From the NCBI RefSeq assembly GCF_006345805.1, contig NW_021829939.1, positions 1-34,821 on the forward strand: a stretch of DNA of 34,821 nt. Reading direction: 5' to 3'. Within the stretch, counting starts at the first letter, position 1; each line of letters starts with the position of its first letter. Made by a program: the position numbers and the translations under genes. Below are positions 2,852 through 30,303 of this stretch, piece by piece. The notes under the pieces are model-generated. The model saw only the letters and a list, made by a program, of their open reading frames with translations, was not told where the DNA came from and did not search any database. This DNA comes from Octopus sinensis. Its lineage: Eukaryota.

Positions 2852-2879
2852 CCATACCATTTTATTATTAAGATATAAA

Positions 2880-2990
2880 TAGGCCCAATGGGATTAGTAT
2901 TCTTTTCTCGATCGGGAGGCTCATTGAAAAGGAGACAAAACACACCCTGGAAACCAGTTGGCTGTACTAGAGGGTATCGATAGCAATCTT
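2880..2990 (+). mobile_element. Degenerate CRE-clade 3' remnant
   Basis: ETSWLY*RVSIAIL resembles WTWLFQRISIAIL of the 867-1058 copy. Confidence 0.5.
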
Positions 2991-3280
2991 GTGCACACTG
3001 GTGAATACTGATTTTCAAATTATCAGTTACGATAATTAATCATAAATAGTCAATCGTCCTTGCAATAGTATAATCATATAAATAGATAAATCTATCATTA
3101 TATTCCACTCATAAATCCAGAAATTATTAAAAATCAAAAATATTCACAACCAAAACGACCACTTAATTAAAAACTGCCTGAACCATAACTCGTTGTTTGG
3201 AGGTAAAATAACAAGTTAAGACACACACCAAGTCCTATATAGTAAATATAATAATCGAAAGTATTAAAAAACTGATTTAT

Positions 3281-3941
3281 TTAAATATCGACAATAACAA
3301 AAATGTCAGTACGATTACTAGTTGTAACAATATTCATACAATGGTAAGTAACAGCCTTGATCTCCGTCCCCAAAAAATAAAAAATATTATTTAAAACTTG
3401 TTCGTGTTTTTTCAAATCAAACTCCTCTCCTTTTCTATAAATGAATCAAAAAACTACAAATCTTACAATCTACATTCCAAAGACCATCCTCCATCACAAT
3501 TTTGACCAAATTGAGTAATATTTATATCCTAAATATTAAAAATAACCAAAAATACATTTGCGACAAAATATTGACCGCAGGAAAATATAAAAATTATTTC
3601 ATCCAGAAAATTGTAAAGTAAAGAATATAAATCGTGTCCTACGTTAAAAATAATCACAAAAAACCTTCAACGGTAAAATCAAAATAATTTTTAAATTCAA
3701 CTTTATTTATATTTGTCATATAACCGTACATTCCGAGAGCAGCCTAAAATTAACAAAATAAAAATGCCAATTCAAAGGCTTCCTCGATATTTGGAGACCC
3801 TAAAAATTTCATGTTTAAATTTATACAGGAATGGATTCTATATTTATTAATTTAATATTTAATACTGAATATCAGCAGGATGGTCCAAATCTTAAAAAAT
3901 TATTATTTAATTTACTAACATTCATATCCACACTCACCCAT
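3281..3941 (-). CDS. ZBTB8OS: Archease (RTCB tRNA-ligase cofactor), 9 exons, 146 aa
   Basis: Exons 3941-3920, 3890-3866, 3837-3827, 3799-3768, 3743-3665, 3638-3556, 3528-3467, 3434-3398, 3370-3281 (441 nt) give MGECGYEYLDHPADIQIHSWSPNIEEAFELAALGMYGYMT...HDLYSLLYNFLDE...GEEFDLKKHEQGTEIKAVTYH...DIFVIVDI*. YEYLDH.AD, GTE.KA.TY and terminal DI are archease hallmarks. The last intron lacks AG. Confidence 0.93.
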
Positions 3942-4167
3942 ATGACAATAAAATAAAATTTAAATAATTAAAATATTTTTTTATAAATATTTTTTAAATT
4001 AAATTTTGTGTGTCAATTATTTGTTTGAAATAATAAGATTTTTGTGTCTATTGATTTAATTGTAACCGTTTTCAGTAAAAAAATTTATTTAATATTATTT
4101 TTCATAATAAAGAAATTTTAATTTCGTTATTTTAATTAATAATAATAATTTATAATAAAAAATTATT

Positions 4168-5388
4168 TTAAAATAAATCAAATTTATTTTCTTGTTGTAG
4201 CATTCTAATATTCTCCAACTCTGAATAATTCTTTTTCAATTTATTCTTCATTTCCATTATCTATAATGAATTAAGATTTTAATACAATATTTAAATCTTT
4301 CTTTGCCTCATTCAATGATTCATACACATTAGAATGCCTTTTATTTATTATTTTGTTATTAAATTCACGAAGTTCCTCTGTAATCTGTTCCACGTCTTCA
4401 GCCCTAAAAAATGATAAAAATTTCCCGCCTTTTTCTTTCTTTTTCCATCAAATCAAAAGCCGAAAAATTTTTCTTAGCCACAATCTGGTCTATGGGACTG
4501 TTCTTGGCCTAAAAGTCAATTTTTATGTGTACAATCTCATTTTCCATAGAAGTAGGAATACGAGTCACATCAACTCCAAAAGGTGCATTTTTAATAGAAT
4601 TATTAATTTCTTAAAATTAATTTATTTTAATTAAATATATTATTAAATAATAAAATAAACTTATTTTTCCAATTTGAATATCAAATATTTTTTGTTGGTT
4701 AATTATTTTGGTCTTTTCTCTCCAATCAACCAGAGCACGACATACACTGAAGATTATAAATAAAAAACAACTTTAAACGATCCAATTTTTTCTGAGTCAC
4801 AATTTTTAAATCGTCGGAAACAATTTTTGGTTTATTTTTATTCATAATTTTTGATTTTTTCTCTTAAAATTCATAGAAAACTATTTTTTACCAATTTTTA
4901 TTGGAATTTGGGTATTTTGGTGGATTTCGTTTTTTAAATGTTTCAAAAAACTGTCTAAACCTGAAGAATATATTTTTTTAAAATCTGAGTCTAGTGGGTT
5001 TGATCTAAGACTCAAATTTTTTAAATTTGGTAAAAATCCTGTCTGTTTTTTGATGTAGAAAAACCGTATGAGTTTGGAATTGAAGTCAGGACGTTTCGGT
5101 CGAGAAGGAGTGTGTTGAGGTCACACTCTTTTGGCGATTGGACCAAAGGTAGTTGAGTTATTTGATTGGCGCGAAGATCAATCCAAAGAGCTTTTTGGAG
5201 GGAATCAAAAAATGAATTTGGTAATATTTTTAGATTGTTTTTTGATAGATCTAAGAACTTAATTATTTTAATATAATTACTTTTATGTTTTTTATATTTA
5301 GGAGTTCTTTTGGAATTTCGTTTAGTTTAGAATTAGATAAATTAATTCTATTTTCATTACATTGTTCATATGCCTTAGATATCATCAT
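4168..5388 (-). CDS. LRRC27: Leucine-rich repeat protein, LRRC27-like, 9 exons, 330 aa
   Basis: Introns 5280-5258, 5064-5039, 4891-4863, 4771-4747, 4660-4610, 4532-4509, 4428-4404 (GC-AG), 4285-4261 leave a 993-nt open frame. It has LRRs (FFDSLQKALWIDLRANQITQLP, LNTLLLDRNVLTSIP, LKNLSLRSNPL) then a coiled coil with RALVDWREK, like LRRC27 RALQEWRER. The LRR call is firm; orthology is from recall. Confidence 0.8.
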
Positions 5389-5670
5389 AAGATTGGTAAC
5401 TTGGTAATATTTTATTTATTTAATTAACAAATAGAATATAAAATATAATATTTTATAAAATATAATAAATTTTAAATTAATATAGTTTCTATTTTTTATA
5501 TCAAAAATGTATAATAAAAAACAACTATCAATATACAAAATTCTTATTTCTAAATTAAACTATAATATAAAGCTAAATATTTATAATTATTTATAAATAT
5601 ATTAATATAAATAATATTTTTAGAAATATAAAAAAATAATAAAAGACTAATACTCAGCACCTTGTTGTGC

Positions 5671-6222
5671 ATGTCAGGCCAACATATTTCTGACCCAATT
5701 ACCACAGAAAATAGTAATTTATAAATAAAATATAATTAATTAGTAATAACCACAAACAAACGTGGTTGGAATGACCCTCCTAAGATGTCATACATGTATA
5801 CAACCTCTGGCTCAGACTCATCCAGCACAGCCTCAAATTCAACATCCTCAAAGCCAAAATTCGATAAAAATGAAGATTTGGGGAAACAGTCTTACGTAAT
5901 CAACAATTCTCAAAAAATAACATCAGGCCTCGTTAAAGTTGTTTAAAAAATAATTATTCCAAAGGAGGCTGTGATTGGTAAAAGAATTGACATTCTTAAC
6001 GAGGCATGGGAAGGAAATTTGCTATCAGAAGAAATAAAGGACTATTTGGTTCAATTAATCACGTGCTTGCTCAAACCTGACTTTTTTCGCGCCGAAAATA
6101 TATGCAAGATTATGGCGGTTGACCACATTAAAGAGGTTCATTTCATTATGTAATAAATTCAGGTAAGTAGGTGGATTGCTGGATATAGAATGCTCATTTC
6201 TCAATTAAAAAATAATATATAA
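5671..6222 (+). CDS. SRA1: Steroid receptor RNA activator protein (SRAP), 4 exons, 155 aa
   Basis: Introns 5714-5743, 5938-5964, 6136-6162. Protein contains NKRGWNDPPKMSY and IGKRIDILNEAWEGNLLSEEIK...MAVDHIKEVSRWIAG, matching SRA1 RGWNDPP and VDHVTEVSQW motifs. Confidence 0.9.
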
Positions 6223-6253
6223 GTTTTTTAATTTAATTTTTACTAACATTTTA

Positions 6254-6874
6254 TTAAAAATCTTCAATTTTTATATAACAGATATTATTTCCCGCCGTTG
6301 TAGCTATTATTAAAGCGCGGGAACCAAAAATACGGGTATATGAATCTCTAAGTTGCATCAAATCATTTTCCTCACTAAAAATACTGTTTAAAATTATATA
6401 TAAATAATATTTAAATTAATTAAAATATATAATAAAATACCTTGTTACAAATAGATGATATTGTGGTGATGTGGGATTGGATTTTTTAAAAGTCTTAACA
6501 CAAGACGGTAAATAAACATCAAAAATGGAATAATAAAAAGGAGTAGTATTACGACGTAGTACATAGCCCAGTTGTGTTAAATTGGAGTATACAGTCATGA
6601 CATTACTCCCCAATAGTCCATCAACTATAAGGGACAGGTCATCGGCCTGTAGTATTTGGCCGTCTTTTAGACATGTTAGTGAGCCCTTGTTGGTTAGATA
6701 TAGTATTTCCTCGGGGAATAAGTAATGTCTACTATTTTTTGAATAACCCATTGTTTTGAAGAAGTTGCCCTAAATTAAAATATATATTTTTTATACTTTT
6801 ATTTTTACTAGTTCTCCTACTTTCAAGTCTTCTATCCAATTAGCATGTGCTGTTTTAGATAGTAATAACTCCAT
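6254..6874 (-). CDS. TSEN54: tRNA-splicing endonuclease subunit Sen54, 3 exons, 178 aa
   Basis: Introns 6796-6770 and 6440-6384. GNFFKTMGYS...YLFPEEILYL..KGS, VYSNLTQLGYVLRR and IFDVY..VKTFKKSNP match the Sen54 N- and C-terminal conserved blocks. Confidence 0.88.
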
Positions 6875-7217
6875 TAATTAAATAACCACAACAAGTGGAT
6901 AAATTATATATATTTTATTATATTATCAAATTTTAAAATTAATTAAATATACTTTACTTAGTAGTTTGACCCAGTCAAACTTAATTTTAATACTTATTAA
7001 ATATATATATTATAATGTGACAAATTATTATAACTTTAGTCATTTTAACTTTTCTATATAGATTAGCTAACGATTAGGAATGACTTTATAAATTTTTATT
7101 TTATTAATATAGTTAATTTAATAAATATTTTTTAAATAATTAATTAGTATATTTAAATTTATAATAAAAGAAGACATAATTTATTGTGGTCCCCTTACTC
7201 TAGTGAGTAATATAAAC

Positions 7218-8699
7218 ATGAGCATTGAGCAGTCACTTATACCGATAATTTCTCCTTGTATTCCAGACGAGGAAAAGATTATCCAATCATTGCTAATATT
7301 AGAAAAGTTCCAACAAGATTTTAGACATTTTATTCAAAAATAAATCAAAATGTATAAATATGTAACGATTAAAGCTATAGATAGATGTTAGAAAGGACAG
7401 ATTGTCATCCATAAAGTCTAGAATTTCAATTGTTGAGCAAAAAATCAAAAACTGGACAAATCGGGCAAGGCAATAAGGATTTATTCTCCCTTCAATTTGC
7501 CTCAGACAATAAAATTTCCAAGAAATGACCTCCAAGTTAGGCCAAATGTTAAAAATGAAACCAAACTCCACTACAAACTATCAAAAGTTTTTTCATTTAA
7601 ATATCTATTATAAATTTAATTAAAAATAAAATTATTTTAATTAATTAATTAGAATTTAGATTTAATTTCTCAATATAAAAATTCTACAATGGTCCCAGCC
7701 TCTTTTGATTTAATAAAAGACAAGGAAAAGACACCGTTTAATGAGGGAATTGGCAGGCCTCCGAACAATTTGAAAAGCACTGGAAATTTTCTTATATATA
7801 ATACAAATATAAATGCGTAATTTATTTTTATATTTATTATTAATTTTTTATTTTAATAAATAGATTTAAAAACTATTCTTTTGTTGATCCTCTTAACGTT
7901 GTTTCAAAAATTACAAAACCACATGAAAAAAGACACGAGCCAGCCAAGGCACCGGAGACCGTGACTTTGGGCCATCAATTCGATCCTTTCCAGCGTTTAA
8001 ATTTTGACTACAATCCTATTTTGGGTGATGTACCTCAAATCAAGGTCCCCGAAAGTCTTCCCGTGCTTTCTGGTTAAACTCAATTTGTTATTTCAGGGAT
8101 TGTAAGTGATTTGAATTATCTCCCTAAAAAAGAAACGGGGATTGCTCCGTCGATTATTTTGACCGAAATCACCGTGGATTTACCGGATCTTGATAACGAA
8201 TTCACCGAGGATCCCGTAATGTCCACACCACCAAAGGTCGAGGCTTCGCATCCCGAATCCAACATTTTTCCAAAACTGAAATTGCGAGAGGAAAACATGA
8301 CTTTGTCATCAAAAATGAAATCGAGGAAAATTTTGTAGTCGAAGATGACAAAAAATGTCGAGGTCACTCCGAAGCCTTCAGGAGAACCGAAACTGAAGGC
8401 TCTGCTGACTCAATTCTTGACGCGGGAGGGATAAATCAGTTCAAATTCCGAAAAAGAAAGAAAATGAAACAAAAACTGAGATTGAACCAAAAAAGGAAGA
8501 GGAAAAAATTGATATATTGTCACAACTCAAAAAAGTGTTAAAAAGAAGAGGAGAGTCTCTAAAAGGGAAGGGAGAGGACTATGTAGAGCCTCCAAAGTCG
8601 AAGAAGTATGAGGAGTCACCACTAATCAAGAGTATGTCTAAAGTCATAAAGAGTGAATCAATGGAGGAGGATGAAAATGAGGCTGGCTGGTCGGATTAA
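7218..8699 (+). CDS. WASHC1: WASH complex subunit 1, frameshifted as written (assembly error, pseudogene or recoded)
   Basis: Introns 7352-7380, 7587-7652, 7817-7863, 8073-8096. Restored frame gives KAIRIYS, EGIGRPPNNLKSTGNFLIYNT, FVDPL, LGDVPQIKVPESLPVLSGIVSDL..GIAPS, ILDAGG, DILSQLKKVLKRRGESLKGK and acidic EEDENEAGWSD*. At least five +1-nt corrections are needed. Confidence 0.88.
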
Positions 8700-8989
8700 A
8701 TTTATTTTGATTACTAATATTATTATATAAGTCACATTTATTGGGTTTCAAGTATTTCTATTTTCTAGGTTTTCAAAAAAAATAATATTTGATAATATTT
8801 TGAGCTAAAAATGGCTTTTTATTTTTTTCTTGCCAAAACAATAGCGAGATTTTTACGTATCAACTTTATTTTTAGCTAAGAGGTAGAATATGATAGTCAG
8901 CTGTATTATCTTAAAAAATTGACATTGTTGTTAAAAAATACTTAATTGTCCATGGTTTGAGCTCTTAGTGTGTTTTCAAACATCCTTAA

Positions 8990-9430
8990 TATTAATTTTA
9001 AAACATATTATTCCTGGAAAGACTGGCAGTCGAGCCAGATGCCGTGATTGTAGGAAGGAGGCACAAGGTCTCGTATTTCGAATGAGGCAGCATTATTTGT
9101 TATTCCGTCTAATATTGATATCCCTCAAAATCCGTCAAAAGTTGAAATTGGCGTAATCAGCGAATTGTCCCTGAGGATGAGGGACCGATCATTAATCAAT
9201 TTTGTTACTACGATGACGTTATCGAACAAAAATTTGATAGATATGCAACTCGCTAGATACGTATATCCAAGAATACTCCTTCTGGAAGTGTAGCACATCT
9301 AGAATTTGTTCAATTTATCAAAATGTTTCTTTTGGGTATTGTTTACATTCTCATCTTCAAATTGGTCGTCCATTTCTTGATCGAGTGTACCACCAACTAC
9401 ATGAGGACTGTCGACAAAAACTTATTTCAT
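8990..9430 (+). mobile_element. Decayed hAT-type transposase N-terminus (BED zinc finger)
   Basis: RARCRDCRKEAQGLVFRMRQH (BED finger), then FVTTMTLSNKNLIDMQLARYVY / VAHLEFVQFIKM / QIGRPFLDRVY across shifting frames. Confidence 0.65.
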
Positions 9431-9588
9431 AAAAATCCTCTTTAAATAACAAAAATAAGATTTTTTACTGTATATAAGTCCAAGTTCCGTCTTGAAAAAC
9501 CTGGAAACGACCCCGTTTCATTTATTGCATTTTTGAATTTCGGACTGCTTCAGGTGGTCTTGGGAAGTGACTTTCACTATGATGATAA

Positions 9589-9668
9589 TACAGTGAATAC
9601 TCTCAAATTCGCCATTTTTGGTTTTGTCATTTTTTGCAGCGAATTTGAGGAATGGCAAATTTCAGAAT
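9589..9668 (+). mobile_element. Left end of a pogo/Tc1-mariner-type MITE
   Basis: TA followed by CAGTGAATACTCTCAAATTCGCCATT (9591-9616); inverted match to 13848-13873. Confidence 0.6.
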
Positions 9669-9769
9669 ATAATCAATAAATTTTGAATGCGAGTAGAACT
9701 GTTTAATAATTCGAAAATAACCAAAATTGACGTAATTGAAAAAATTAATTTTATTTTAACAAAGAATTA

Positions 9770-10265
9770 TGCTTTTTTATCAAAGTAATATTCCAGTCCC
9801 GTTTGTAGGTGATCCCTGCCTCCAACAACACCCGTACTCTCCTTACATGATCTTTTGATGACCCAAACGTAACCCGGAAACACCTTCTCTTCCTTCTGCA
9901 GAAGAACTCAATCGGAGTGCATTTCTTTATAACCGACCAAAATTCCTCTGCATGGGCCACCTTTTCCTTGAGTGGGTTTCCCAGTTCCTTGCAGAAACGT
10001 AGGAAACCCTGTCCATTCTTCTGCGTCGCCTCCTCGGAAGCAAGGCTGCCAACTGAGGTGTCAGTGTGGAGCATAATCTTCCTTCTGAGTGAGTTCAAAC
10101 GTTCCGCTTTCGAACAAGCAATTGCAAACCTCCAGGCTGAGCAGGCATACTCAACCGTCGGAGCAATCACTTGTTGGTAGACCTTGCTAACACAATCTTT
10201 CAGGAGAAAGGGACTCTTCTTTAACAGAGCTTTCAAGACATCCCTCGTTATCTTTCGAAAGGATT
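9770..10265 (-). mobile_element. LINE ORF2 C-terminal fragment
   Basis: VYQQVIAPTVEYACSAW...KAERLNSLRRKI matches the post-RT LY...I.P.LEYA..AW motif. The segment is GC-richer than its flanks. Confidence 0.7.
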
Positions 10266-10866
10266 GTAGGTTTTTAAACAAAATGTAGTGTACTATTATT
10301 ACAAGCTGTACATTTTTTCTTAGATCAGAGTCCTTTCGAAAAATAACAAGTGATAGATAGGCGAAATCAACGCTTTTGTTGCAGATTATATCAAATTATG
10401 TGTTCAGGAAATATTAGAAATCAATTTGAAAATCTAGTTTAGACTCAATTGAAAATGCAAGTATTTTAATTTAAAATTTATATTTAGGACATTTTAATTG
10501 TCTTTGTTAACGTCCAAAAAAATCAAAATTTGATTTAAAGTTAAGGAACAGCGGTTAGGTGTCGGGCTAGAGTGAATGTAACCGGTTCCCCATACGTATT
10601 CATCCACCATGTCACATATTATGTTAATTAGAATTTTTCTCTAATAGGTCAGCTTAGCATCAATAATTTCGTTTTCAAAATTTATGGCATAATCGATCCA
10701 GAATAACACTACCTATTGTAACCTCAAAAAAACTTCAAGGCATTAAAAAACACGAAAAATACATACGATCTTGACGCTTTCAGGATTATAACACAACTGC
10801 GCATTCTAGAAAAATATGATCAAGACAAATTATGTTATGCAAACAAGAAAATCGATTAATGAAATG

Positions 10867-11826
<960 letters not shown>

Positions 11827-12149
11827 TCTATTTTACTGTTATTAAAAATATTCAAATTAAGTGCCGTGATTAAAAAGATTTGATTACCAGAAATGTATAA
11901 TATAAATAATAGTTCAATTTTTTTAATTTAATGGACTTCATTTAAAACAGAAAAAGAAAAAAGGTCAATTTAAAATGCCGAATTAATTAAGGTTAAATAT
12001 AAAATTGAAAGGATTGAATAAACTAATTATTACGATGTTAATTTTTCATTATCCGCGAGAGATTAGTCTCCTCATTTTAGAGGAGGAAGTAGCAACATCC
12101 CTCTAATATCCTCTGCCTCCAAATCAGTTACGACTCCTTTTCCCCTACT

Positions 12150-13200
12150 TTTCATATTGTCATCATACGAACCACTTGTTATGCTGTACAGTGAAGACAG
12201 GAATGCGGGACACATCAATAGGATTTCGGATGCCAAGACCTCCAAAGGAGACAGGAAGGGAAGCTTGTTTCCAGCCATGATCGTCGAATTTGATGTTTAT
12301 GATGCGTTCGGTTGTTTTCCGGAAAAGGACATTAATAGAATGAAGTTGATCATTTTCTAAGAAGCAGGGTGACCCCCGTAGCACATGATTTAATTTTTGG
12401 ATGCCAAGGGCATTTTTGAGCAGGAAAAAGGCTGTATGTGGGTCCAACAAATTAAGACGAACAAAAGTCTTTTCCAGTAGCATTTCCTTAGTTTCAAGAG
12501 CGTCCTTGATTCCACCATCTATCAATGGGCAGCCTAATATCTCCAGACTGATACTAGGCGTAATGGACGGTCCGGGAATTATCTCACTGAAAGAGGAAAC
12601 AATAACCTCGAATTCATCACAACGGAACCCAAAATTAATGATTTCACTTTTTGAAGTGCTCAGTATACGACCAACGCATTCAAGTCTCGGAATTAGGTCA
12701 ACAAGCGTCTTGAAGACAGTTTCGGGATGACCTCCGAGGGTGCAGTCATCAAGGTACTAAACATTCAGCGGGGTTGAGCAGCTATTAGCAATGTGATTAA
12801 TTCCAAGGCAAAAGAGAACAGGAACCAATAAGTCTCCTTGTTGAACCCCCGAGGACGAGGAAATATGGTAAGGGCCATAAACGAGGGTGGATGGTTTCGC
12901 GTATGAGCTGAAAACATAGTTGTATATTTCGGGACAAAATTCAAGACAGTTCTCCAATATAGAGTCGCGGCGAATGGTGTTAAATGCATTACGGATGTCC
13001 AATTTAACAATAATATAGGGGTATTGTTGTTTATGTGGTTGAATGCACGGATTCCGTGTATTGCAGCTTCACAACCTTCTAGGGTACCAACTCCAAGTTG
13101 AATAGGGCACATTAGCGGGGTTAATGTGGAGATAACAGCCCTGCATGCCATCTTTGAAGCTAGCCGACGGAAGACAGATCCAACTGCAATGGGTCGAACA
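12150..13200 (-). mobile_element. CRE-clade retrotransposon RT region, frameshifted
   Basis: RPIAVG, QLGVG..GCEAAIH, DIRNAFNTI, GVQQGD, YLDD, LEILGCPL, WKQASLPVSFGGLGIR spread over several frames with stops. Confidence 0.9.
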
Positions 13201-13719
13201 CCCCCTCCTTTCTTTTATATTTTCAAGATGACAAGGTATACAATGAGAAATACAATTATCAATCAAAATTGACTTTTTTCCTTCGTCAAAAAGTTGTCAA
13301 AATTAATCCGCCATTTGGCCCGACAGAGCATTGATAGTCGTAATTTTGGAAACATCTTGGCATCTTTAAGTTTCCAATTAAAACAGGTTTTAGTTTGTGA
13401 TTATTTACACACAACATTACAGATATCCGATCCTTAAAATCTTTATATCGTCCAAACTGAGTCTTGCAAATACTTTTAGGTAGAATTAGTTTGTAGAAAA
13501 TCCCTGTTTCATCAAGGTTATAAATTTCATCGAGAGTATAGGACTTGGATAAATTTTGAAATTCATTTAAAAATCCTTTGATGTTAACTTTTTATCAGTT
13601 TTCATCTGCCCATACAATTTTCTCAGACGGAATTCATTTCTTTTTTCAAACTTGAACAAGAACTTTTTAAAAATGTATTACTTATCAATATTTTTTTATT
13701 TAAAAATTTAAACAAATTG

Positions 13720-13875
13720 TGGCGAATTTCAGAATTAGCGAATCTCCATTGAAACTAGAATTTTTTTTAAAAAAGGGCGAATCTAAGAATTGGCGAATTT
13801 AAGAATGGCGAATTTAAGAATGGCGAATTTAAGAATGGCGAATTTAGAATGGCGAATTTGGGGGTATTCACTGTA
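13720..13875 (-). mobile_element. Right end of a pogo/Tc1-mariner-type MITE with a 15-bp subterminal tandem repeat
   Basis: AAGAATGGCGAATTT x4-5 (13786-13859), then the TIR whose reverse complement is CAGTGAATACCCCCAAATTCGCCATT, followed by TA. Confidence 0.65.
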
Positions 13876-17478: not shown

Positions 17479-18289
17479 ATCTAGAATAAAAATAATTTTT
17501 TATTAAAATTAACGATAAATTTTATCCAAAAAATATTAGAATAACCTAAAATCGTGAAACAAGCTGGCTTTTTCAGTGGATATCGTTCGCGATATTGCGT
17601 GGAAATTGCCTGTCCATCCGCTCGGCGACTCATCTAATTTAGTTAACTTCTCTATTTTCTTTTGACCTTAATAAATCACTAAAGTGAAAAAAAAACCTAA
17701 AATGAAACAACAATATTCAACGTATACGCTAATTTCATAAATTGCGTGTGGTTGGTTTTGTTAATATAAATTGGTTAAAAATGAATTTTACATTAAAAAT
17801 CGTATTTTTAATGATAATTTCAATACACATTTTACGCGCAATAGGCTATAAGGTTGGCCCATTGATTTGAAAAAATAGAAATATATTAATTATCGGTCTA
17901 TGATAATGTAAAATTTTCCCCAAAAAGCGGTTTATTTCATAAAATCATTGTATTTTACAGGGATGGCAATAATATTTCTCCAAAAGCAAGGGTTCTCCCA
18001 AAAAGTAGGTTCCCCGCAACTCGATTTTTTCAATTCAAGGTCTCACTATATTTTAACCAATATTTAGACAGGTGTTATTCAGATTTTTCCGTTTTTGTAA
18101 AAAATGCTACCTAAAAATTTAGTACTAACTATTGTAGAGTACAAAACATTGTTTCTTATTTAAAAAGCAATACGATTGATGTAAGTTTAATTGAAATGAA
18201 AAAGTCAAGATTTATAAATAAAAAAATTTTTTACTAAAGATTCTAGATTAAAACCAAATAAGAAACAAACAATTGTAATTGCTAAAAAA

Positions 18290-19055
18290 TAATTTGTCAA
18301 CATTCAGAGAGATCATCCCTAAAGCCACAGAAACCAAACCAGAACAACTAGAAATACTTGGATGCCCTCTCACTGATGCAGGAATCAGTAACACTTTAAT
18401 AACAAAAGAACATCAACTAAAAACAACTTTCAGACGTTTGGAGTTGCTAGACGCACATACCTCCCTATTCCTGCTAAAAAACGCCTTGTCAGCACAGAAA
18501 CTAAATTACGTTCTTCGGGGTGACCCTGCTACCTGAAAACGCAACAGCTCGACAATATCGATCGTCTCTTTCGGACCACAATTGAACGCATTACGAATGT
18601 GAAATTCGACGACCAAGGGTGGGACCAAGCGACCCTACCCGTTAACCTGGGCGGACTGGGAATCCCTTCTCCGAATGATCTGGCTCGCCCCGCATATCTA
18701 TCCTCTTTGGACTCCAACCAACTGCTGATCAGGATGATTCTCCAACTCCAAACTGAAAGACCATCTGCGAGGATAAATACGAGAGGCTTCTGAACCAGTC
18801 AAACCAACACAGACGTGCCTGTCTAGTGACTGGAAGATGCGAATCGAGTGGAGCTTGGATCAATGCACTCCCCGTTGATAGTGTCGGAACTCACTTTGAC
18901 GACGATACTGTCCGAATTGACATCAGCACCAGACTTGGACTGGAGATTTGCCGGACTCACAAATGCCGGTGTGGGGCCACCGTCGATTGTTACGGACACC
19001 ATGCTCTCTCTTGTCGAAGAAGTGCAGGACAATTTCCAAGACACAAGGCGATCAT
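18290..19055 (+). mobile_element. CRE-clade retrotransposon, RT C-terminus to zinc knuckle
   Basis: LEILGCPL, LDAHTSLFLLKN, WDQATLPVNLGGLGI, SGAWINALP, LGLEIC..HKCRCG..DCYGHHALSC. Confidence 0.88.
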
Positions 19056-19925
19056 TTCCTTTCCTTCCATAAAATTTTTGACAATCGACGAATAATCTTT
19101 CAACCTTTTGGAGTATATACCTCCAACGGTTATCCATCCAATAGAAGTTTTTAAATCAATGGATGCTAATTCACATACATTCTGTTCAATTATTCTTGGA
19201 TTCCGAATGTCAATAGATTTTTTGTAAAATATTGATGTTCCTGTGCCGGCGTTAGCACCAGGATGCCAAGGAATATCAATCGAGCTGTATCCAGGAATAG
19301 TGATACTTCCAGACTTCTTCATTTTCGTCTCGTTAATGATAAATACATCCATCTGAACTGTGCTGATAAGAGCTATCAGCTCTGCTGCCCGCTTTCGAAG
19401 AGAGCGGGCATTAACCAGGGTAATCCTGGTCACGTTTGATTTATTTGGTGGCTGCTTCCCTCTTTTAGGAGAGCCACCAAACCGAGTAAAAACTTGGCAT
19501 CTTTTTTAGTTCTGGTCATGTCCTTAATAGATCTTTCGAGCTCATTAATTAAGTCAGCTCGAGGTCGACCCGTCATTGACCCAGCTCCTGAAGTCGACAA
19601 AGTCTGCACCGCCGAGTGAGATATAGTCGTTTCCTCTGTCTGTGTTCCAACTTCAACTGTTTTCCTAACTCTTGGAACGTTCCATCCCGCCCATGGCTTC
19701 AAGGGTAAATTTTTTATGTCTGTTTGGTTGATTTTAGCATTCTCAGAAGCTTCTTTTAACAGTTTCTGAACCAGAATTTTATCATTTTTTAGCTTTGAAG
19801 CTTCTTTAGCTTTCTCACAGCCCCGATAATTTGCCAAGTGGCTCGAAGAACCGCAGTTGACACATTTTTTCATGTTAGAGTCCTTGCAATCTGTTCCAGC
19901 ATGTGTACCCGAACAAAATTTCGAT
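19056..19925 (-). mobile_element. Jockey/I-like LINE fragment: ORF1 zinc knuckles plus ORF2 APE endonuclease start
   Basis: ORF1 end FCSGTHAGTDC...CVNCGSSSHLANYRGC. ORF2 start ITLVNARSL...IINETK...GTGTSIFYK. Truncated within the APE domain. Confidence 0.88.
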
Positions 19926-20360
19926 CCAATTATTATTATTTAAGCAATAATCATCCCTTTTTTAAATTCAGTTAACTGTTTCTTGGGAGAACGTGGCATA
20001 TGCAATAACAAGAAAAGTGAGCAATGTTTTTTGTCACAAGATTTAAATTTTTATGCTTTAAATTCCTTATATTGAAATGAAATCGCATTAATAAATTAGT
20101 ATACTTAAGAATTAGAATAAAAATGAAGCGTAAGATTAAATTTTTCATTAATTTGTCAATAAAAGCATGAAAAAATGGCTGAGCAATTTTTTTTGACGAG
20201 CACTGTACATTTGTCAACTATTAAATCTGAAAGTTGGAGTTTACATTTGAAAACGCATTATGAAGTAAACAAATTGAAAGAATAGTCATTTTTGTTTTAT
20301 ATAGTGCTAATGTTAAAAAAAAGAGGTATGGACGGTTCCAATTCCAAAACGCGCATATAA

Positions 20361-20640
20361 TTAATTCGCGGCTGACGACATAATTGAATAGGCATTGCCG
20401 CGAACAACGGCCAAACCTATTCTCTGTCGAAGCCATGTGGGTTCCCTCCAGTCGTTTTTTATATGAGCGATTTTACGTCCGATTTCTTTGAGGAATGACT
20501 CAGTTACAGTTCCTGTGACACCCGAAGTCTCGACTGCCACAGGAACAAAGCGGTACGAATCTCCGATTGTGGAATATTTGGCAATTTTTGCTTTTTCAGC
20601 AAAGTTAGCGGCCGATCTCTGAAGAATAGTCTGACAACTA
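20361..20640 (-). mobile_element. CRE-clade 3' end (RLE domain)
   Basis: SAANFAEKAKIAKY...YRFVPVAVETSG...EPTWLRQRIGLAVVRGNAYSIMSSAAN*. Absent from the ORF track because it has no start codon. Confidence 0.85.
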
Positions 20641-20724
20641 TTTTTTAGTATAAAGAGATTAATTATCGGAAATGTTTGTGCTGAATGTGTGGACTGTGCT
20701 CAAAGTCAGTCATTAAAAGTGCAT

Positions 20725-20990
20725 ATTCCTTGATTAACATTAAAGCAAAAACTCCAAACGAAGGTTATTAGATGGATATAAAAGATTTGAGTCCCTAGTC
20801 TGAATCGTGGCATCAAATATATTTTTAACATAATCGATATTTATTTCAAATTTTACTTTGCCTAAGATACTAATTCATATAAAGCATTTCTAATTTCTTC
20901 TATTTTAAAAGCTTTATTTTACAATTTTAGACCTCCTTAAATATTGCAATCAGAAAACAGTAAAGACCTCAAAAATGAGAAGGAAAAGTA
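20725..20990 (+). mobile_element. Degenerate DDE integrase remnant
   Basis: PLINIKAKTPNEGY*MDIKDL...IIDIYFKF resembles the I.A..P.ERFQMDL.D..L..ID..SK integrase start; contains stops. Confidence 0.5.
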
Positions 20991-22008
20991 ATTTAAACAA
21001 GGGGTTTTTAATCTAGGTCAATTTTCACAAAAACTAGGTAACAATATAGGTCAAGTGTGTAAGACGATAGTATGGGTAACGCGGACGTGTCGTTATCAAA
21101 AAGTTTGCTTATGTTTAATTATGTTAGTTGTATTGATACGTTATCGACGGATATGATCCGAATAAAAAGATATTTTGTTTATATTGTCTATTGTCTAACT
21201 TTCCGTCATTAACCAAACAGAAATCTATAAATTTCGTCCTAAAAGAGTTCTAAATTGATGAATGTCTAAATGTGAATTGCCCATTATTGGTATGTTGGTA
21301 AACCGGACGTCCTCACTAATGTGAAACGGCTGAAACTAAATTCCTACAAAGTTTACACAGACCTAAGATATTAAATTTTTTTATTAAATCTTATTTATTA
21401 TTTATATTTTTCCTAATTTATCAAATCGAATAAAATAAATTATTCACGTGTTAAGCACGTTGTATTCTTTTCTTGTGTTGTGCATTCCTGTTGTTAATTC
21501 TTATTTTATTATTTCTTGCTATCAATATATTTTTTTTTATAATATTATCATTTTTATATATTTGAAGATTAATTAAATTGACCGTTTGTAAAATATCCTG
21601 AATAAGGTTTATTTTGCAAGTAAATTTGTATTCATTTTATCAATTAATTAATCTCCATTCCTATGGAATTTTTTCAATTAAATTTATTTTCTTCTACACC
21701 ATATTGATCATTTTTAGTATTTTATTGTTTATTTTTTATGGTTCTAGTTTCCATTTTTATTAAAATAACGCTCACGAGTTTTTTTATAGTGTGATTCTAA
21801 TTTTTCTGGTGACAATTATTATTATTTAAGCCAAACAAAATCACCGTCTTAACCATTAACTAACACGTTCAGGTGATTCCGACACTTCTCAACAGTCGAG
21901 CCATCTTTTCACGATGTTCCGACTGTGACCCCACACATTTTCTGTATGTACGGTGAATGGTTTGTGATCCATTTCCACGATCCCCCCATTTGCCTCTACG
22001 AGAGACTT

Positions 22009-22565
22009 CAACTTGATAAACAATTGGCAAGAGATTTGAATCGTAATGTCGAAATATCGATCGAACTTGTATTGATTCATCGATGAATTCTTGGCTACCG
22101 AGGCAAAAATATATGACTAGTCTTCTATTTTTCACATAGAGTTCGGTTTTTGGAAGCTTTTAATTTTTTGGCTGGATTTGCCAATAATTTATTTTCATAT
22201 CGCCCAAACATGCTCTATTGCAGTGTTTCTTGGCTTTTTTAACCGAGAACCACTTTGGTTGTTGAATTTTTCTGGGGGACCACCAGTAACAAAACAATTT
22301 AATAAAAAATCATAGTATTGATGTTAAATCGGTAGATCATCCAATTGTATACTAATTTTGCATGGGCTGCCTATATCATAACATGTTGTTCCAAGAGAAA
22401 TTAACAATTTTTGGGTAGTTTGGAGTCAGAGAAGATGCTTGATGTTACCAGACCAAGAGCAACTTGATAAACAATTGGCACGAGATTTGAATCGTAATGT
22501 CGAAATATCGATCGAACCTCTATTGATTCGTCGATCAATTCTTGGCTACCGCGGCAAAAATATAT
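22009..22565. repeat. Dispersed 106-bp direct repeat (22009-22114 and 22460-22565), probably transposon-derived
   Basis: CAACTTGATAAACAATTGGCA.GAGATTTGAATCGTAATGTCGAAATATCGATCGAAC...GGCTACCG.GGCAAAAATATAT occurs twice. Confidence 0.85.
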
Positions 22566-22569
22566 AAAT

Positions 22570-22715
22570 CTTTAATAAACAATACCATAATTGAAACCCC
22601 TTCAGATCAATTAAATCCATCTGAAATCTTTCATTTGGACGATGGGCAATCACATTATTTTCTTCATCCACAAGTTTCAAGGGGGTTGAAAATTTGCATA
22701 TTTGTGAATAAATCC
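22570..22715 (-). mobile_element. Integrase-core fragment fused to the Merlin remnant
   Basis: VIAHRPNERFQMDLIDLK motif. Confidence 0.55.
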
Positions 22716-22719
22716 CTCC

Positions 22720-23233
22720 AATCTGCGTAATCCCATTATAGGCGGCCCAACCATCAGTAATGATATGGGTGCCGGGAAGTACGCGTCGAACGATAACTTC
22801 ATTAAATGTTTCCGCTGTTCTTTCTAAAGGATAAATGCAAATAGAACCTACAACTTCTTCAAAAAAGCACTTTCTAGTTTCCCTGTCTATTCCACACAAT
22901 ACCCAATGGCCTGGTCGCCAATGACCTTGATGGTACTTTCTGTGAAAAAATTTGCACTCGTCGATTTCCACTATCGACTCTTCTGTTCTGTCTAAAGGAT
23001 AAATGGAAAAAAGCACTTGCAACTTTTTCAAAAAAGCACTTTCTATTTCCCTGTCTATTCCACCCAATATTCAATGGCCTGGTCGCCCATGACCTTGATG
23101 GTACTTTCTGTGAAAAAATTTGCACTCGTCGATTTCCACTATCGACTCTTCTGTTCTGTCTAAAGGATAAATGGAAAAAAAAACCTGCAACAAATCTTTT
23201 CTTGAAAGATACAGCTTTCCAGAAATTACACAA
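22720..23233 (-). mobile_element. Merlin (IS1016/IS1595-like) transposase remnant with an internal ~169-bp tandem duplication
   Basis: IVEIDECKFFHRKYHQG..WVLCGIDRETRKCF..RTAETF..I..VLPGTHIITDGWAAY. The VEIDE-to-KCF block is present twice. Confidence 0.85.
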
Positions 23234-23600
23234 AAATTTTCAGCTTTTTTGCTGAGTTAAAGCCGCGCTGACATCGTGCGACATTAAACAGGAATTAATC
23301 CGAGACCGTAAAGCATTCTTCAACGAGGGTTTAGAATTAGATTTTATATGAGAGAGACGGAACGAGAGAGCCCTTCATAAACTGACTCATATTCTTTTTA
23401 AAGATAAAAACAAAGGAATCATCGGGGAGACGGGCAGAGGAGCCCAACGCAAAGGTTGGAAAAAGGAATAAACATTCCAATTAGAAATGGATGGGTCGGA
23501 AATGACAGAATCGATTAGAGAGGATAAGATTTGGGCCGCAGAAATACGGGGAGATTTTGGATTCGAATAGGAATGCGGAAAGAAGCATGATAATCGTCAA

Positions 23601-24053
23601 TCAATTCAAGAACAGATTCAGAATCCAACAAAAATGGATCTGAAGGATTATCAAGAGGGGGAAATGTTCGACCGAATCAAAGGCTTTTTTAACATCAATC
23701 CATGTAGAACATAAATTGTTTCCATTTTTTGATTTAAACATTGATTGACAATAGCTTGTTCCTTTTCCCCTTTTCTCTGATAAGTTTTTAATCGATTTTA
23801 TTCTTTGTTTGAGGAAGATAGCGTCTTGCGGGTCCCAACACCGCTTTAGTTTACTTTCCACGTTCCTTTTTTCACCAAGTAGTTTGGATTGTTCTTCATT
23901 TATCAATCGATTTTTGTACGAGAAGAGAAACCTCTTTTTTCCATAGTCCTCCAGATAACTTCGAATAATGTTTCTCATTCTTTCATCCAAATAATTGATC
24001 TCGTCAAGATTTAGTATTTTCAATTCTTGAGTATTTGCCAATTTCATAGACAT
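23601..24053 (-). mobile_element. RT fragment of an R2/NeSL-like non-LTR element
   Basis: NLCSTWIDVKKAFDSVEH is an RT motif; the WID..KAFDSV.H form is typical of RLE-clade elements. Confidence 0.65.
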
Positions 24054-24108
24054 ATAAAAATTGAAATGATTCCAATTAATGTTGCTGATTGATAGCGTCT
24101 GGCATGCC

Positions 24109-24381
24109 GTCTGGAAGTATCACTATTCCTGAATACAGCTCGATTGATATTCCTTGGCATCCTGGTGCTAACGCCGGCACAGGAACATCAATATTTTACA
24201 AAAAGTCTATTGACATTCGGAATCCAAGAATAATTGAACAGATCCTGATTTGACTTCACGCACCCATATGCAGTATGCTTTGCATTTAAGTCTCCAACAA
24301 GAATTGGATTTTCAATTCCTTCCATAAAATTTTTGACAATCGACGAATAATCTTTCAACCTTTTGGAGTATATACTTCCAA
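24109..24381. mobile_element. Rearranged second copy of the Jockey/I-like APE domain (forward piece plus inverted piece)
   Basis: 24109-24242 matches the SGSITIP..RIIEQ part of the 19056-19433 copy on +. 24241-24381 is the downstream IYSKRLKDY..GDLNAKH part on -. Confidence 0.88.
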
Positions 24382-24679
24382 GTTCTCTTTGCAATAAAAC
24401 TTTCGACAGTGTCAGCATTCTGTGGGTGATTTTTTTCCTTATGTTTTTTTAAAAAGTTGTTTCCCATTATGACGTCGCATATCATGCACTGCGATTTATC
24501 GACGTTTTCAGATTCAGTATATTTGGTAAATCCATATTAGACATAAGAATCAATCCATTTGCGATTTACCATTACAATCAAATAACAAAAAAAGTGGAAT
24601 AAAATTAATTAAATATTCAAATGAATAAATAATTTTTCAGTTATAAAAATTAATTGAGCTAAACATGCTTCGGGGGACG

Positions 24680-24960
24680 ACGTTAAGAAACACTGGTCTA
24701 TTGGATTTTATATATTTAATTATTGTTTCTGAAATATGCCAAGGGTCATTATCTTGCTGAAAAATAAACGAGTTTAGCTTTTTTAGAGCTATATGGGACC
24801 TGCCGGTCAGTCCGCAAAGACGCACTGCGGATCGAGAGGCAGTTCCGCGTAGAATAGAGATTGGAAGAGGCAGCTCGCATCCTTCGGTCATGCGTCTTCA
24901 AGGCAATTTTATCGCCGAGCATACGCAATCCGCTTCTTTACTTAGCACGCCAGTGGTCTA
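24680..24960 (-). mobile_element. Chimeric remnant: CRE fragment plus Tc1 DDE fragment
   Basis: LPLPISILRGTASRSAVRL (CRE LP...GG.G.RSA-like) runs into FIFQQDNDPWH (Tc1 FQQDND.KH). Confidence 0.55.
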
Positions 24961-26339
24961 AAAGCAAGGGGGACAAACTCGTATGCGTCAGAAAGAAGTA
25001 CGTATTTTTAGCTCTTCCACTCCTTTAAAAATGTTTATATAATTTGCATTGTTCATTTTTTTACATTTTAAAAAGGCCTTAGTCACTTTCAAATTCGAGT
25101 TATCAAATTTGATTCATCTGATTTTTGTTGGCAATATGTAGTCAGACAATCTGTTATGTCGTCGAAAATCATTGCCGACGTAAATTTTATGTTCTTAGAC
25201 AACTTGTGGAGGTTAAAAAATGCCTTGTTGACTGCTTCGCTGTCGTTAAACATAGTTAAATCGGCATTGTTTATTTTTTAATTTTATACCTAATATTCAA
25301 AAAATTTCATTAATTTATTTCGGGCTTTATTTGGTGATGTATGAAATGCACAAGTATCCATTTTTCTGGAAAAATTTCACTAAACGTCGTAAATTCATTA
25401 AATTGGTCAATCCGGCACTGTAGAATATTCTCCGAAATTTGTATTATTATTTATTAATAGTGTTTTTGACGCGTAAATAACAATTATGCAATAAATATAT
25501 GCAGGCTTTGTCAACAATCTTAAAAATTACTTTATCACTAAAAATAAGATTAATCAAAGGATGATGCAGATAGATCGCGGTGACGGAAAACTTTCTGACG
25601 GGTCTACATTATTCCCGTTCAAGATGGGACAAAATATGCTTAATTGACCGACACTTGTTGCCTCGTCCCCCTGGCTCTCGAAACCAATAGGGGTAACTGA
25701 CCCTAAAACTATCAAACTTCTTTTAGAGATTGGTTTAATCATCTCGAAGAGGAGTCACGACAGTCGCGAAACGAGCTGGCCTTTTTAACGTTTATTATTA
25801 TTATAATTTCAAATCTGCAACAAAAAGAAAGTTACAATCTTCTCGTCGCTTATTACACTTTTCTCTTTCTCATATTTCTTAACGTTGAAAAAATAAATAC
25901 ATTAGTTGGTCGTTAATTTTTCTGAGATTTTTTATATCTTTTTCAAATAGCTTCTTATAGATGGATGTCTTATTTTGTAAAGTAGAATGTTAGATTCAAG
26001 AAAACCAAGAGTGACTTTGAAGGCCGATTATGTTCGAAGAAATTTGATTTTTAAATATTGATTCAATTCATTTTAGAAATATTTATAAATCTTAATTGAA
26101 GCCAATCAAATGTTATGAAAACGAAGTATTCATCAACAAAATATTTTTATCACTGCATACTGATTTAAAAAAATGCTTCAAAATATATTGGCGAAATTGC
26201 CGTGGCGTTTTTTGACACTGAAAAACAATCCCTCTGACAGGACCCGGCGGAGTGAACTAAGATATCGGGAAAAACACGGAGATTTTCTATAATAAAATGC
26301 TGCATCGAGTATTTTCTCTGTCACAGCAGGAAATTGTGA

Positions 26340-26954
26340 GTTAGTCTTACACCAGTCACACGACAACTGGACAGCCATCAACCTGCAAATCTTCAATATT
26401 TAGCTTTTGTCCAAATTCCTTTGCTTTAGTAATAATGTTTCATCAGTCAGGTAACCGTTAATAACATCCATTCAAGATAGCAATCTATCAATAAATTCTC
26501 AAGCAGATAATGATTTTTAGAAGCTTTGAACTCTCACTATTTTTCCATTGTTCTTTATTTTTTAAAATTTCAGATAAAGTAGAATTTTCTAGGTCCAGGT
26601 TTAATTCTCTTCTAATAATTTGAGACAATTCATTCAGCGAGACTTTCATCGAATCCTTGATTTAACAAATCTGTTCTTTTAGATAAATTTCGGTCATTTT
26701 TCTAACCATAGAATTATAAAAAGCGTGCTGTTAATTAATTTTGAAAAAAAAATTAATACAAAAAATTATCAACAAAATTATTTTTTTGATAATAATAAAC
26801 AAAATTAATTGAAATTATATTAATCCTATCGTTCGGACTGCGGATTATTGAATTTTCGAAACATTGAATCAAATTTGGATCAAGTTACAAAATTTGTAAT
26901 TTTAATTAAACAAATTCGGATTATTGAGATTCGGATTAACGAGTGTTGACTGTA
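26340..26954 (-). mobile_element. pogo/Tigger-like transposon 5' part
   Basis: Terminus TA-CAGTCAACACTCGTTAATCCGAA (ends 26952). CENP-B-like HTH remnants STLSEILKNKEQW and YLTDETLLLK/KAKEFGQKLNIEDL, with stops and shifts. Confidence 0.6.
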
Positions 26955-27329
26955 ATTGTACCTCTCATTGGTTGCCATCGAATTTGGAAAATATTATGTT
27001 GAGCGCCAAGAATGAAACCGTCCGAAACTCCAATCATGACAGCTGTCATCAATTTTAATCCTTGACAAAAATAAGATAATCAAATATTTTTCAAACAAAA
27101 AATTAACTAATTGTTTTTTAGTATCTTTTTTTGGCGTTTAGAATGCACCTTCTTCCCCATTCCCTCACTATTTTTAAAATTGACAAAATTGTTGGAAAAT
27201 TTTGGAATAATAGTGACGACATTTCCGTAAGGATGCTCAAACCTTTGCAGACATAGTGAAGAATTAGTTCCATAGTACTTTTTATGGGGACCTTTTAAGT
27301 TATTATAAATCGGATATATTATCTCCTTT

Positions 27330-27665
27330 GGAGAAGAGAGCGGAGTTCAATATGTCGATAGAAGAGTTGTCTTTGCCTACTAAAGTTGTTCAGTCCTATG
27401 AATTGATGAAGTGTCGGGAAATTTTAAACAAATGTTAGACTGTGATGGAATTAATGGACATTCCGGGGAATATATCTAAGGAAGAGTCATGTCGAGTTAT
27501 CCTGTGTGGTGTGAGTGGTAGGAGTTGGGTGGGTTGGGAGTCGTTAAAGATATGATTGCCGTGGAGAATCGTTTGGGCACTGAGGGTTTTGGTCAAGTCA
27601 GGCAGTGGTTGGATGTTGTCGAGCCAATTTATCGTTTGAGGATTATTGACTATTTGAGAAATTTT
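27330..27665 (-). mobile_element. Degenerate LINE ORF2 C-terminal fragment
   Basis: TLSAQTILHGNHIFN..PHRITRH-type post-RT tail; GC-richer than its flanks. Confidence 0.4.
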
Positions 27666-27709
27666 GTCTTACTACTTTACTAATTATTTTAAATACTGTT
27701 AGAATTGAA

Positions 27710-27736
27710 TACAGTGAACTCTCGCAAATTGGCCAC
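27710..27736 (+). mobile_element. Solo TA-CAGTGAA terminus related to the 9591/13873 TIR family
   Basis: TACAGTGAACTCTCGCAAATTGGCCA versus TACAGTGAATACTCTCAAATTCGCCA. Confidence 0.4.
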
Positions 27737-27892
27737 CTCGAAATTTACTAAGATAAAAATTAATTTTCTTAGTATATTGGCCAATTCTCAAATTTTGACT
27801 ATCTCATATTATAGCTCGCAGAAAGCTTTAAAAAATGGTTTTAATAAATGATAGTAATGAATTAAAAGTGTGAATAACTAAAAATATTTATT

Positions 27893-29069
<1,177 letters not shown>

Positions 29070-29261
29070 CGAGTTATAAATTAAATATAACCTATTCAAT
29101 TTTATTTTTTCTACTTAATTTAATATTTTCAAATTGCAATTTAAACTAAACAATATTTGACTACTTTTTTACTTTTCATTGATCCTCCAATTACTTTCGA
29201 TTTGATACAATTTTATTTGAATAAAGCTACTTTATTATAAATAAAAAGAAATTGATCATCC

Positions 29262-29412
29262 AAAGTGGATTCAGGTTTGGAAGATCAATTGCCGATGTAA
29301 TATAAGGAGACAGATGTATTTCTGCCATATGCCAAAAATTTGAAATGGTAACCATAATATTGGGCATTGATATGAGCAGGGCATTTTACACGATTCGCAG
29401 AGACAAGCTGAA
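29262..29412 (+). mobile_element. Short LINE RT fragment
   Basis: QSGFRFGRSIADV...ILGIDMSRAFYTIRRDKL. Confidence 0.7.
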
Positions 29413-30303
29413 GTGATATATGATATAGACTTTCTGTCTCATGATAAGTCAACATTTCTGAACATTACTCTACGTGTATAAAAATTGTAAAATTTCTTTA
29501 ATAAAATTTCATCTCAGAATTGAAGTTTCATCTCAAAATCTCAGTGAACATTGTCTTAATAAATCAATTTACTGATTTGAAAGCTACATAAACTCCCAAT
29601 CACTTAGCATTTTGTAAACAAAATTGACAGAATGAAAAACTTATTCAAGAATTTTTTTTAATCTTTGCTTTTTGAGCCGTAGACTTTTGATCAAAGGATA
29701 GTTAGGATAAAGATAAAGTGTTAGACCATCTAACTTTGAACTATGAGATAGTTAGGATAAAGTGTTAGACCATTTAGTTTTCTTAACTAACCGATGTGAT
29801 ACATCTATTACAAAAAAACGATTTTCTGTCATGTTATTGCTTTAGAATGTCAAAATCTCCATTCTTTTTCATTTCTGTAATTTTAAACCAGCTATAAAAT
29901 AATTATTTCAAACCTGTAATTGAAATATGTTTATCCAATACCCGGTATTATTCTTTTACAGAATTTCGCATAGTCGTTAGTAATATTCATTGGGCTTAAT
30001 TGTTATTAAAAATAGATGCTATAGTCATTTTATCCTATCAGTTAATCATAGTTTTCAAGTGAAGTTCTATCAATCAATATAGTCTTAACATTTTTGATCC
30101 TATACCATTTTAAAATTATTTGAAAGTTTTTTGTTTACAAAATTGTGCCAAATAGTTTGCTAAAATAAGAATATATACGACTTTTTAAACTGACATTCAA
30201 GTAAAAAAACAAAAATCTTGCCAATTTTTCTGATAAAACAAAAATAAGATAATATTTATTGAAGTGGGAGTCACATCCTCAAAAATTTAAAACAAATCAA
30301 GAA

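Follow-up and report, generated by a model that had tools for sequence, protein, structure and literature searches.

A frame-broken WASH1 copy in probable dicyemid DNA: young pseudogene or local consensus error

The WASH1 homologue and its exon structure

The stretch of DNA analysed here (34,821 nucleotides, referred to as the window) carries at 7218-8699 on the forward strand a homologue of WASH1, whose six exons are read in three frames against those of relatives and are separated by introns of 29, 66, 47, 24 and probably 28 nt, all of them bordered by GT..AG. The Pfam profile WASH_WAHD (PF11945) matches three separately translated pieces (7653-7817, 7844-8074 and 8078-8335), with profile positions 139-281 of 292 being covered. 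Exon 1 (7218-7351) starts with the ATG at 7218 and aligns with exon 1 of two sister copies described below, and intron 1 (7352-7380, 29 nt, GT..AG) joins INQN to IDVRKD with the spacing found in other animal WASH1 proteins. The 3' junction of exon 2 (7381-7586), by which KLSK is joined to NLDL across intron 2 (7587-7652, 66 nt), as well as the junction of NINA with FKNY across intron 3 (7817-7863, 47 nt), are those used in the RefSeq model XP_036356071.1. Exon 3 (7653-7816; WASH_WAHD E = 5.5e-3) and exon 4 (7864-8072; E = 3.9e-9) encode parts of the WAHD1 domain, the latter in a single frame and with 99% identity to XP_036356071.1. Intron 4 (8073-8096, 24 nt) contains an in-frame TAA, and its removal yields LPVLSGIVSDLNY, in agreement with other WASH1 proteins. 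Exon 5a (8097-8334; E = 2.6e-4) covers the end of WAHD1 and then a linker of reduced form, in which no polyproline stretch is found. Exon 5b (8363-8699) encodes the C-terminus in the order WH2-like LLDSILDAGG, basic segment, central motif LKKVLKRRGESLKG and acidic tail with GWSD at its end, followed by the TAA stop at 8697-8699. A Pfam search gave no match for the short VCA/WH2-like motif; the WH2-like, central and acidic-Trp motifs were recognised by aligning the pieces from the window and from sister copy A with the C-termini of four full-length animal WASH1 proteins. In the window this C-terminal VCA module is distributed across three frames.

The segment 8335-8362 (+) is probably a fifth intron, of 28 nt in the window and 29 nt in the sister copies, with GT..AG borders and a TAG at 8336. 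This assignment is based on the reading frame: removal of the segment leaves the majority sequence of the three copies open for 430 codons, and if it were kept in, a frameshift would be common to the two sister copies. The segment is atypical in its GAG acceptor and in its GC content of 39%, and near 8354 it contains a one-base difference private to the window. A preliminary description of this DNA had rightly regarded the splice sites of the gene as intact, but its gene model missed this tiny fifth intron as well as a compensated pair of indels at 8272-8286; an additional base which it proposed near 8350 for a better WH2 match falls inside the probable intron.

Neighbouring genes and other features of the window

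Genes for archease, a leucine-rich repeat protein (LRRC27), SRA1, TSEN54 and uridine phosphorylase (UPP) accompany WASH1, and all five are free of frame breaks, as had been stated before. The archease gene (3284-3666, reverse strand) has a tiny intron of about 27 nt in the window vs 30 nt in the sister copies; since this net difference of 3 nt falls inside the intron, the coding frame is untouched. UPP (10870-11721, reverse strand) is intact and has four introns of 22, 24, 24 and 23 nt, the third of which (around 11180-11203) appears to be of the GC-AG type. A cathepsin L gene with Inhibitor_I29 and Peptidase_C1 domains lies at 27896-28917 on the reverse strand and shows one frame break near 28716, where it is shorter by one base than the copy on the sister contig (98.5% identity), directly after a 31-nt intron (GAATTGGAG in the window, GAATTTGGAG in the other copy).

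Positions 1808-2677 form a tandem array with a unit of 94 nt (189-nt double unit), comprising 9.2 copies with 91% matches. At the other end, a GC-rich block (32000-34821, 53% GC) stands out in a window otherwise of 25-40% GC and carries on the reverse strand a 358-aa reverse transcriptase ORF (32075-33148; RVT_1, E = 1.6e-34) of a LINE-type element, for which no counterpart was found in the examined part of the sister contig.

Sister copies of the locus

Contig VCDQ01006887.1 of assembly GCA_006345805.1, labelled Octopus sinensis, follows the window collinearly with an identity of 93-99% and contains two copies of window positions 2861-8794, about 80 kb apart from each other: copy A at 5336-11263 and copy B at 85076-92397. 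Divergence of the window from copy A is about 4% in a left block (2861-9590), in which copy A, copy B and the window are nearly equidistant, and 0.6-1.1% in a right block (17479-30131). Patches of 22 consecutive private substitutions occur at 3111-3360 on the window lineage and at 5361-5700 in copy A. This unevenness of divergence, together with the patches, suggests a mosaic history of the aligned sequences, for example by recombination, gene conversion or mixed haplotypes. A segment of 4.3 kb (9591-13875), which comprises the UPP gene and ORFs resembling remnants of transposable elements (without a Pfam match), is absent from both sister copies, its flanks being contiguous on VCDQ01006887.1; the difference may be either an insertion in the window lineage or a deletion in the others.

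In the three-way alignment, the WASH1 copy of the window has lost one base without compensation at five sites, at each of which the base is present in both copy A and copy B. The window reads A5 at 7336-7340, where both sister copies have A6, and its frame changes there from FIQK to INQN; it again reads A5 instead of A6 at 7447-7451; it has five A at 8311-8315 compared to six bases in both sister copies; it reads CT at 8405-8406 where both have CTT, a run which does not consist of A and whose shortening splits the WH2 motif between KALL and DSILDAGG; and it has A3 at 8457-8459 compared to A4 in both (all on the forward strand). The majority sequence of the window, copy A and copy B is an open frame of 430 codons, and the ancestral state of the gene was thus intact. 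In addition to the five losses, a compensated pair is found at 8272-8286 (+): A4 at 8272-75 replaces A5 of the sister copies, and an extra G at 8286 cancels the shift, leaving four codons which differ (LKLR vs TEIV/TEIA). It should also be noted that a second aligner renders this stretch as a run of mismatches. The breaks of the window are clumped within 7335-7594 and 8271-8456, the interval that separates these two stretches being free of them, and nonsense codons in the homologous frame are found in none of the three WASH1 copies.

Several statements of the preliminary description can be judged by these alignments. Its count of at least five missing single bases is borne out, as are the two breaks at 7336-7340 and 7447-7451 and the absence of nonsense codons after repair, but several of the remaining positions were placed wrongly. 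A break it assumed around 7900-7930 does not exist, exon 4 being in one frame from 7864 to 8072, and it is copy A, not the window, which is without a base at 7906. The short A4 run it pointed out near 8271 is indeed one base shorter than in the sister copies, but has no lasting effect, as the extra G restores the frame; and the last break, assigned to an A5 run at 8451-8455, has the frame effect described but lies in the A3 run at 8457-8459. Likewise, the notion that every break can be placed in a run of A is true for four of the five and fails for the CT at 8405-06.

The sister copies have private deletions of their own in WASH1, one in copy A and five in copy B, at positions other than those of the window. 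These include changes from T3 to T2, G3 to G2 and C2 to C1, those of copy B being spread over T, G, C and A runs. Taken together, the three copies show 11 uncompensated deletions and no uncompensated insertion, and a fully open WASH1 is seen in neither the window nor copy A nor copy B. Copy B has three further frame-changing indels in neighbouring genes, adding up to eight with the five in WASH1. Nevertheless, the private substitutions of both sister copies reject neutrality (omega 0.24 and p = 0.004 for copy A, 0.19 and p = 1e-5 for copy B). As these copies are clearly constrained and yet have private deletions, it shows that frameshifts which are artefactual or very recent do occur in such material.

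Programmed recoding and frameshifting

The preliminary description had raised the exciting alternative of a functional gene, in which A runs are sites of transcriptional slippage or insertional editing that brings back the frame, or in which serial -1 frameshifting does so. Some of the observations would suit such a gene: A runs are the location of four of the five breaks, all breaks shift the frame in one direction, the homologous frames are without a nonsense codon, and all three copies have private frame breaks, although copies A and B are under purifying selection. However, judged from the three aligned copies, the breaks of the window are private and no site is conserved; copies A and B are in frame wherever the window is broken and have their own breaks elsewhere, and slippage, editing and serial frameshifting in the form proposed are thereby refuted. 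The runs in the window are only A3 to A5 in length (A5, A5, A5, A3), the break at 8405-06 is located within CTGCTGAC, where a mechanism acting on A runs cannot operate, and the sister copies have breaks in T, G and C runs. A slippery sequence, be it a long homopolymer or an X XXY YYZ heptamer, is not found at every break. Programmed recoding as the explanation of this gene is therefore considered very improbable. Hardly better placed is a looser version of the idea: should the deletions be real in the DNA of all three copies, the gene might tolerate frameshifts at changing positions by an RNA-level or translational correction that is not tied to fixed sites, a scenario to which we attach very little probability.

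A different type of frameshifting may come to mind at the first break, which reads CAA AAA TAA: a +1 shift at AAA-TAA (7338-7343) as in Euplotes, combined with an alternative GT..AG intron of 33 nt at 7352-7384, would result in the open reading FIQKKSKYVRKD. The sister copies, however, pass through this site with A6 into INQNID, the spacing of which is that of ISQQVE in the WASH1 of other animals, and the AAA-TAA motif arises only from the missing base. None of the other four breaks has such a motif, and the gene resides in an animal genome in which TAA serves as a stop, as at the end of the gene itself (8697-8699). We regard this reading as extremely improbable. Reassignment of TAA or TAG as sense codons was also tried and rejected, the homologous frame being a different one and the gene ending at TAA.

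Young pseudogene or local consensus error

Two ordinary causes are the only viable ones: decay of a young pseudogene and local error in the consensus sequence. The preliminary description had named the same two and put the error first. Both have stood, but their ranking shifts slightly towards the pseudogene, because the breaks are concentrated in WASH1, the other genes of the window are almost all intact, and one break lies outside an A run. We slightly favour the view that the WASH1 of the window is a young pseudogene of a duplicated gene, giving it about an even chance of being correct.

The argument for a pseudogene is based mainly on the distribution of short indels private to the window. 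The coding part of WASH1 (1.29 kb) has 5-7 of them and non-coding sequence has 16 in 2.4 kb, whereas not one falls into the 1.86 kb of coding sequence that belongs to the neighbours (archease, an unnamed gene, the leucine-rich repeat protein, SRA1, TSEN54); for this concentration a binomial test gives p = 0.006 to 0.0006. The content of homopolymers cannot explain it, since the four neighbouring genes in the shared block contain 39 A/T runs of at least five bases vs 17 in WASH1. On the window lineage only, WASH1 resembles non-coding DNA in this respect, as selection acting gene by gene predicts. The events are not all of the homopolymer kind either, as they include the change from T2 to T1, that from A4 to A3 and the compensated deletion/insertion pair. 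Elsewhere, the window can be compared with copy A over a further 12.7 kb, in which the two diverge by about 1%, and single-base differences are rare there and evenly balanced (11 vs 9). The private substitutions of WASH1 in the window (6 synonymous, 14 non-synonymous) correspond to an omega of 0.62, which is compatible with neutrality (p = 0.23) and differs significantly neither from copies A plus B (p = 0.06) nor from the neighbouring genes (p = 0.33), and with five indels taken into account, 14 non-synonymous changes are observed vs 17 expected. Finally, a paralogue exists, as one contig holds both WASH1 copies A and B.

Several observations speak against a pseudogene. All five losses are deletions, for which there is a chance of about 9% given the non-coding private indels of the same lineage (11 deletions, 7 insertions); across all lineages, the bias towards deletions in coding sequence (12:3) compared to non-coding sequence (22:17) does not reach significance (p = 0.13). 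Counting the compensated pair as two indels, one arrives at seven indels alongside only 9 non-synonymous changes vs about 21 expected (p = 0.003), but the data agree with the neutral model when the alternative alignment is used (p = 0.28), and the test for long neutral decay thus depends on the alignment. Nonsense codons and mutated splice sites are absent, though only about one would be expected. Further, the constrained copies A and B, as discussed above, have WASH1 deletions too.

The rival explanation, that the gene is intact in the organism and the bases were lost in a poorly polished long-read stretch, draws on part of the same data. It would account for the fact that all uncompensated breaks are one-base deletions lying mostly in A runs, for their clumping, and for the profile of WASH1, which is rich in indels and poor in substitutions and in this resembles consensus error: in the gapped alignment, the ratio of indels to substitutions is 0.5 in WASH1 coding sequence vs 0.2 in non-coding DNA, and by the alignment-dependent test just mentioned, indels in such number should, if neutral, be accompanied by more non-synonymous changes. 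The window's cathepsin L gene has a one-base loss as well, and the frame-changing indels of copy B, in WASH1 and its neighbours alike, are best read as consensus error in view of its low omega. The assembly of Dicyema japonicum was merged from Illumina and PacBio assemblies (PMC6736024), which makes patches of lower quality conceivable. Errors, however, should ignore the boundaries of genes, whereas no indel is found in the 1.86 kb of adjacent coding sequence with its more numerous and longer A/T runs, and UPP is intact. In the rest of the window, the length of runs of 5-6 bases is the same as in copy A in 96% of cases; two of the breaks lie in short runs (T2 and A4), although longer ones close by have been spared; and 670 nt (7595-8270) inside the supposed bad patch are without any private indel. 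Assembly error of a uniform kind was rejected, as it should neither cluster in WASH1 nor leave five other genes intact. Error confined to this stretch remains a serious contender, to which we would give somewhat less than an even chance.

Under the favoured reading of a young pseudogene, the course of events might be envisaged as follows. An intact ancestral WASH1 of about 430 residues would have comprised WAHD1, a short linker without polyproline and the WH2-like, central and acidic-Trp motifs. Selection on the lineage leading to the window copy would then have been relaxed, probably because a paralogous copy exists, and five single-base deletions would have accumulated without compensation, so that the copy as written could no longer make the protein. 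Nothing would rescue it, and the breaks would be ordinary mutations rather than signals. Two elements of this scenario go beyond the alignments: that the bases would be lacking in the genome of the organism and not just in its assembly, and that redundancy would have been the cause of the decay.

Origin of the locus and a chimeric protein model

When the exon 4 piece was compared with 1.84 billion representative proteins, a single close match was obtained, XP_036356071.1, all others having an identity of about 40%. This 141-aa protein, annotated as 'WASH complex subunit 1-like [Octopus sinensis]' with a gene span of 10001-91670 on VCDQ01006887.1, is chimeric: its exon 2 is taken from copy A and its exons 3-4 from copy B, about 81 kb apart, and it ends at the TAA inside the unrecognised 24-nt intron. 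Searches with the unaltered ORF pieces (7437-7610, 8078-8335 and the C-terminal ORF of copy A) found no relatives in a collection of 5.8 billion proteins; an exact look-up of two ORFs, as a gene caller would produce them, and an exact 32-mer scan of metagenome contigs gave no match either.

The size of the introns offers a hint to the source of the DNA. Tiny introns occur in WASH1 (29, 24 and 28 nt), in UPP (22-24 nt) and in cathepsin L (31 nt), and among animals introns this short (mostly below 30 nt) have been reported only for myxobolid myxozoans and Dicyema japonicum (PMC13644364). The latter has Octopus sinensis as its host and possesses a repeat-rich genome of 67.5 Mb with a mean intron length of 38 bp (PMC6736024). 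Based on introns of 22-31 nt and the octopus host, we infer that both the window and VCDQ01006887.1 are DNA of a dicyemid (Dicyema-type) parasite. The likeness to D. japonicum extends from the ultra-short introns in WASH1, UPP and cathepsin L (PMC6736024, PMC13644364) to the AT-rich and repeat-rich character of the locus with its compact genes, and the sister locus was found in the assembly of the known host; a difference is that the sister contig is labelled octopus.

As a candidate for recoding the gene is of small direct value, and the finding is an ordinary one. More useful is a by-product of the analysis, namely the probable dicyemid origin of the locus and of its counterpart in the assembly of Octopus sinensis. 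The chimeric model XP_036356071.1, at the least, would then be a RefSeq protein listed under octopus but built on parasite sequence, which concerns users of those gene sets. Should the deletions be real, a duplicated cytoskeletal regulator would be losing one of its copies in an animal genome that is among the most reduced, which would be of modest interest to studies of gene loss in parasites.

Comparison with known systems

WASH1 (WASHC1) is the Arp2/3-activating subunit of the endosomal, five-subunit WASH complex. The gene in the window shares with it a predicted N-terminal WAHD1 domain and C-terminal WH2-like, central and acidic-Trp motifs, but its protein reaches an identity of no more than about 40% with the nearest non-dicyemid proteins, with 430 codons it is a short version in which the polyproline linker is lacking, and the window copy is split over shifting frames, with one uninterrupted spliced frame being absent.

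Transcriptional slippage at poly(A) tracts rescues frameshifted genes in endosymbionts of insects, and slippage or editing is also known from some RNA viruses; the tracts known to slip are long (about 8 bases or more) and conserved. Single-base deficits in A runs of an AT-rich genome are what the window has in common with these cases, but its runs are of 3-5 bases and not conserved, and one site does not consist of A at all.

Another parallel may be seen in the subtelomeric WASH paralogues and pseudogenes of humans (WASH2P, WASH3P and others), where a multicopy WASH gene likewise has some of its copies disabled. The lineage and the duplication are independent of those in the window, however, and here the duplicated block includes neighbouring genes.
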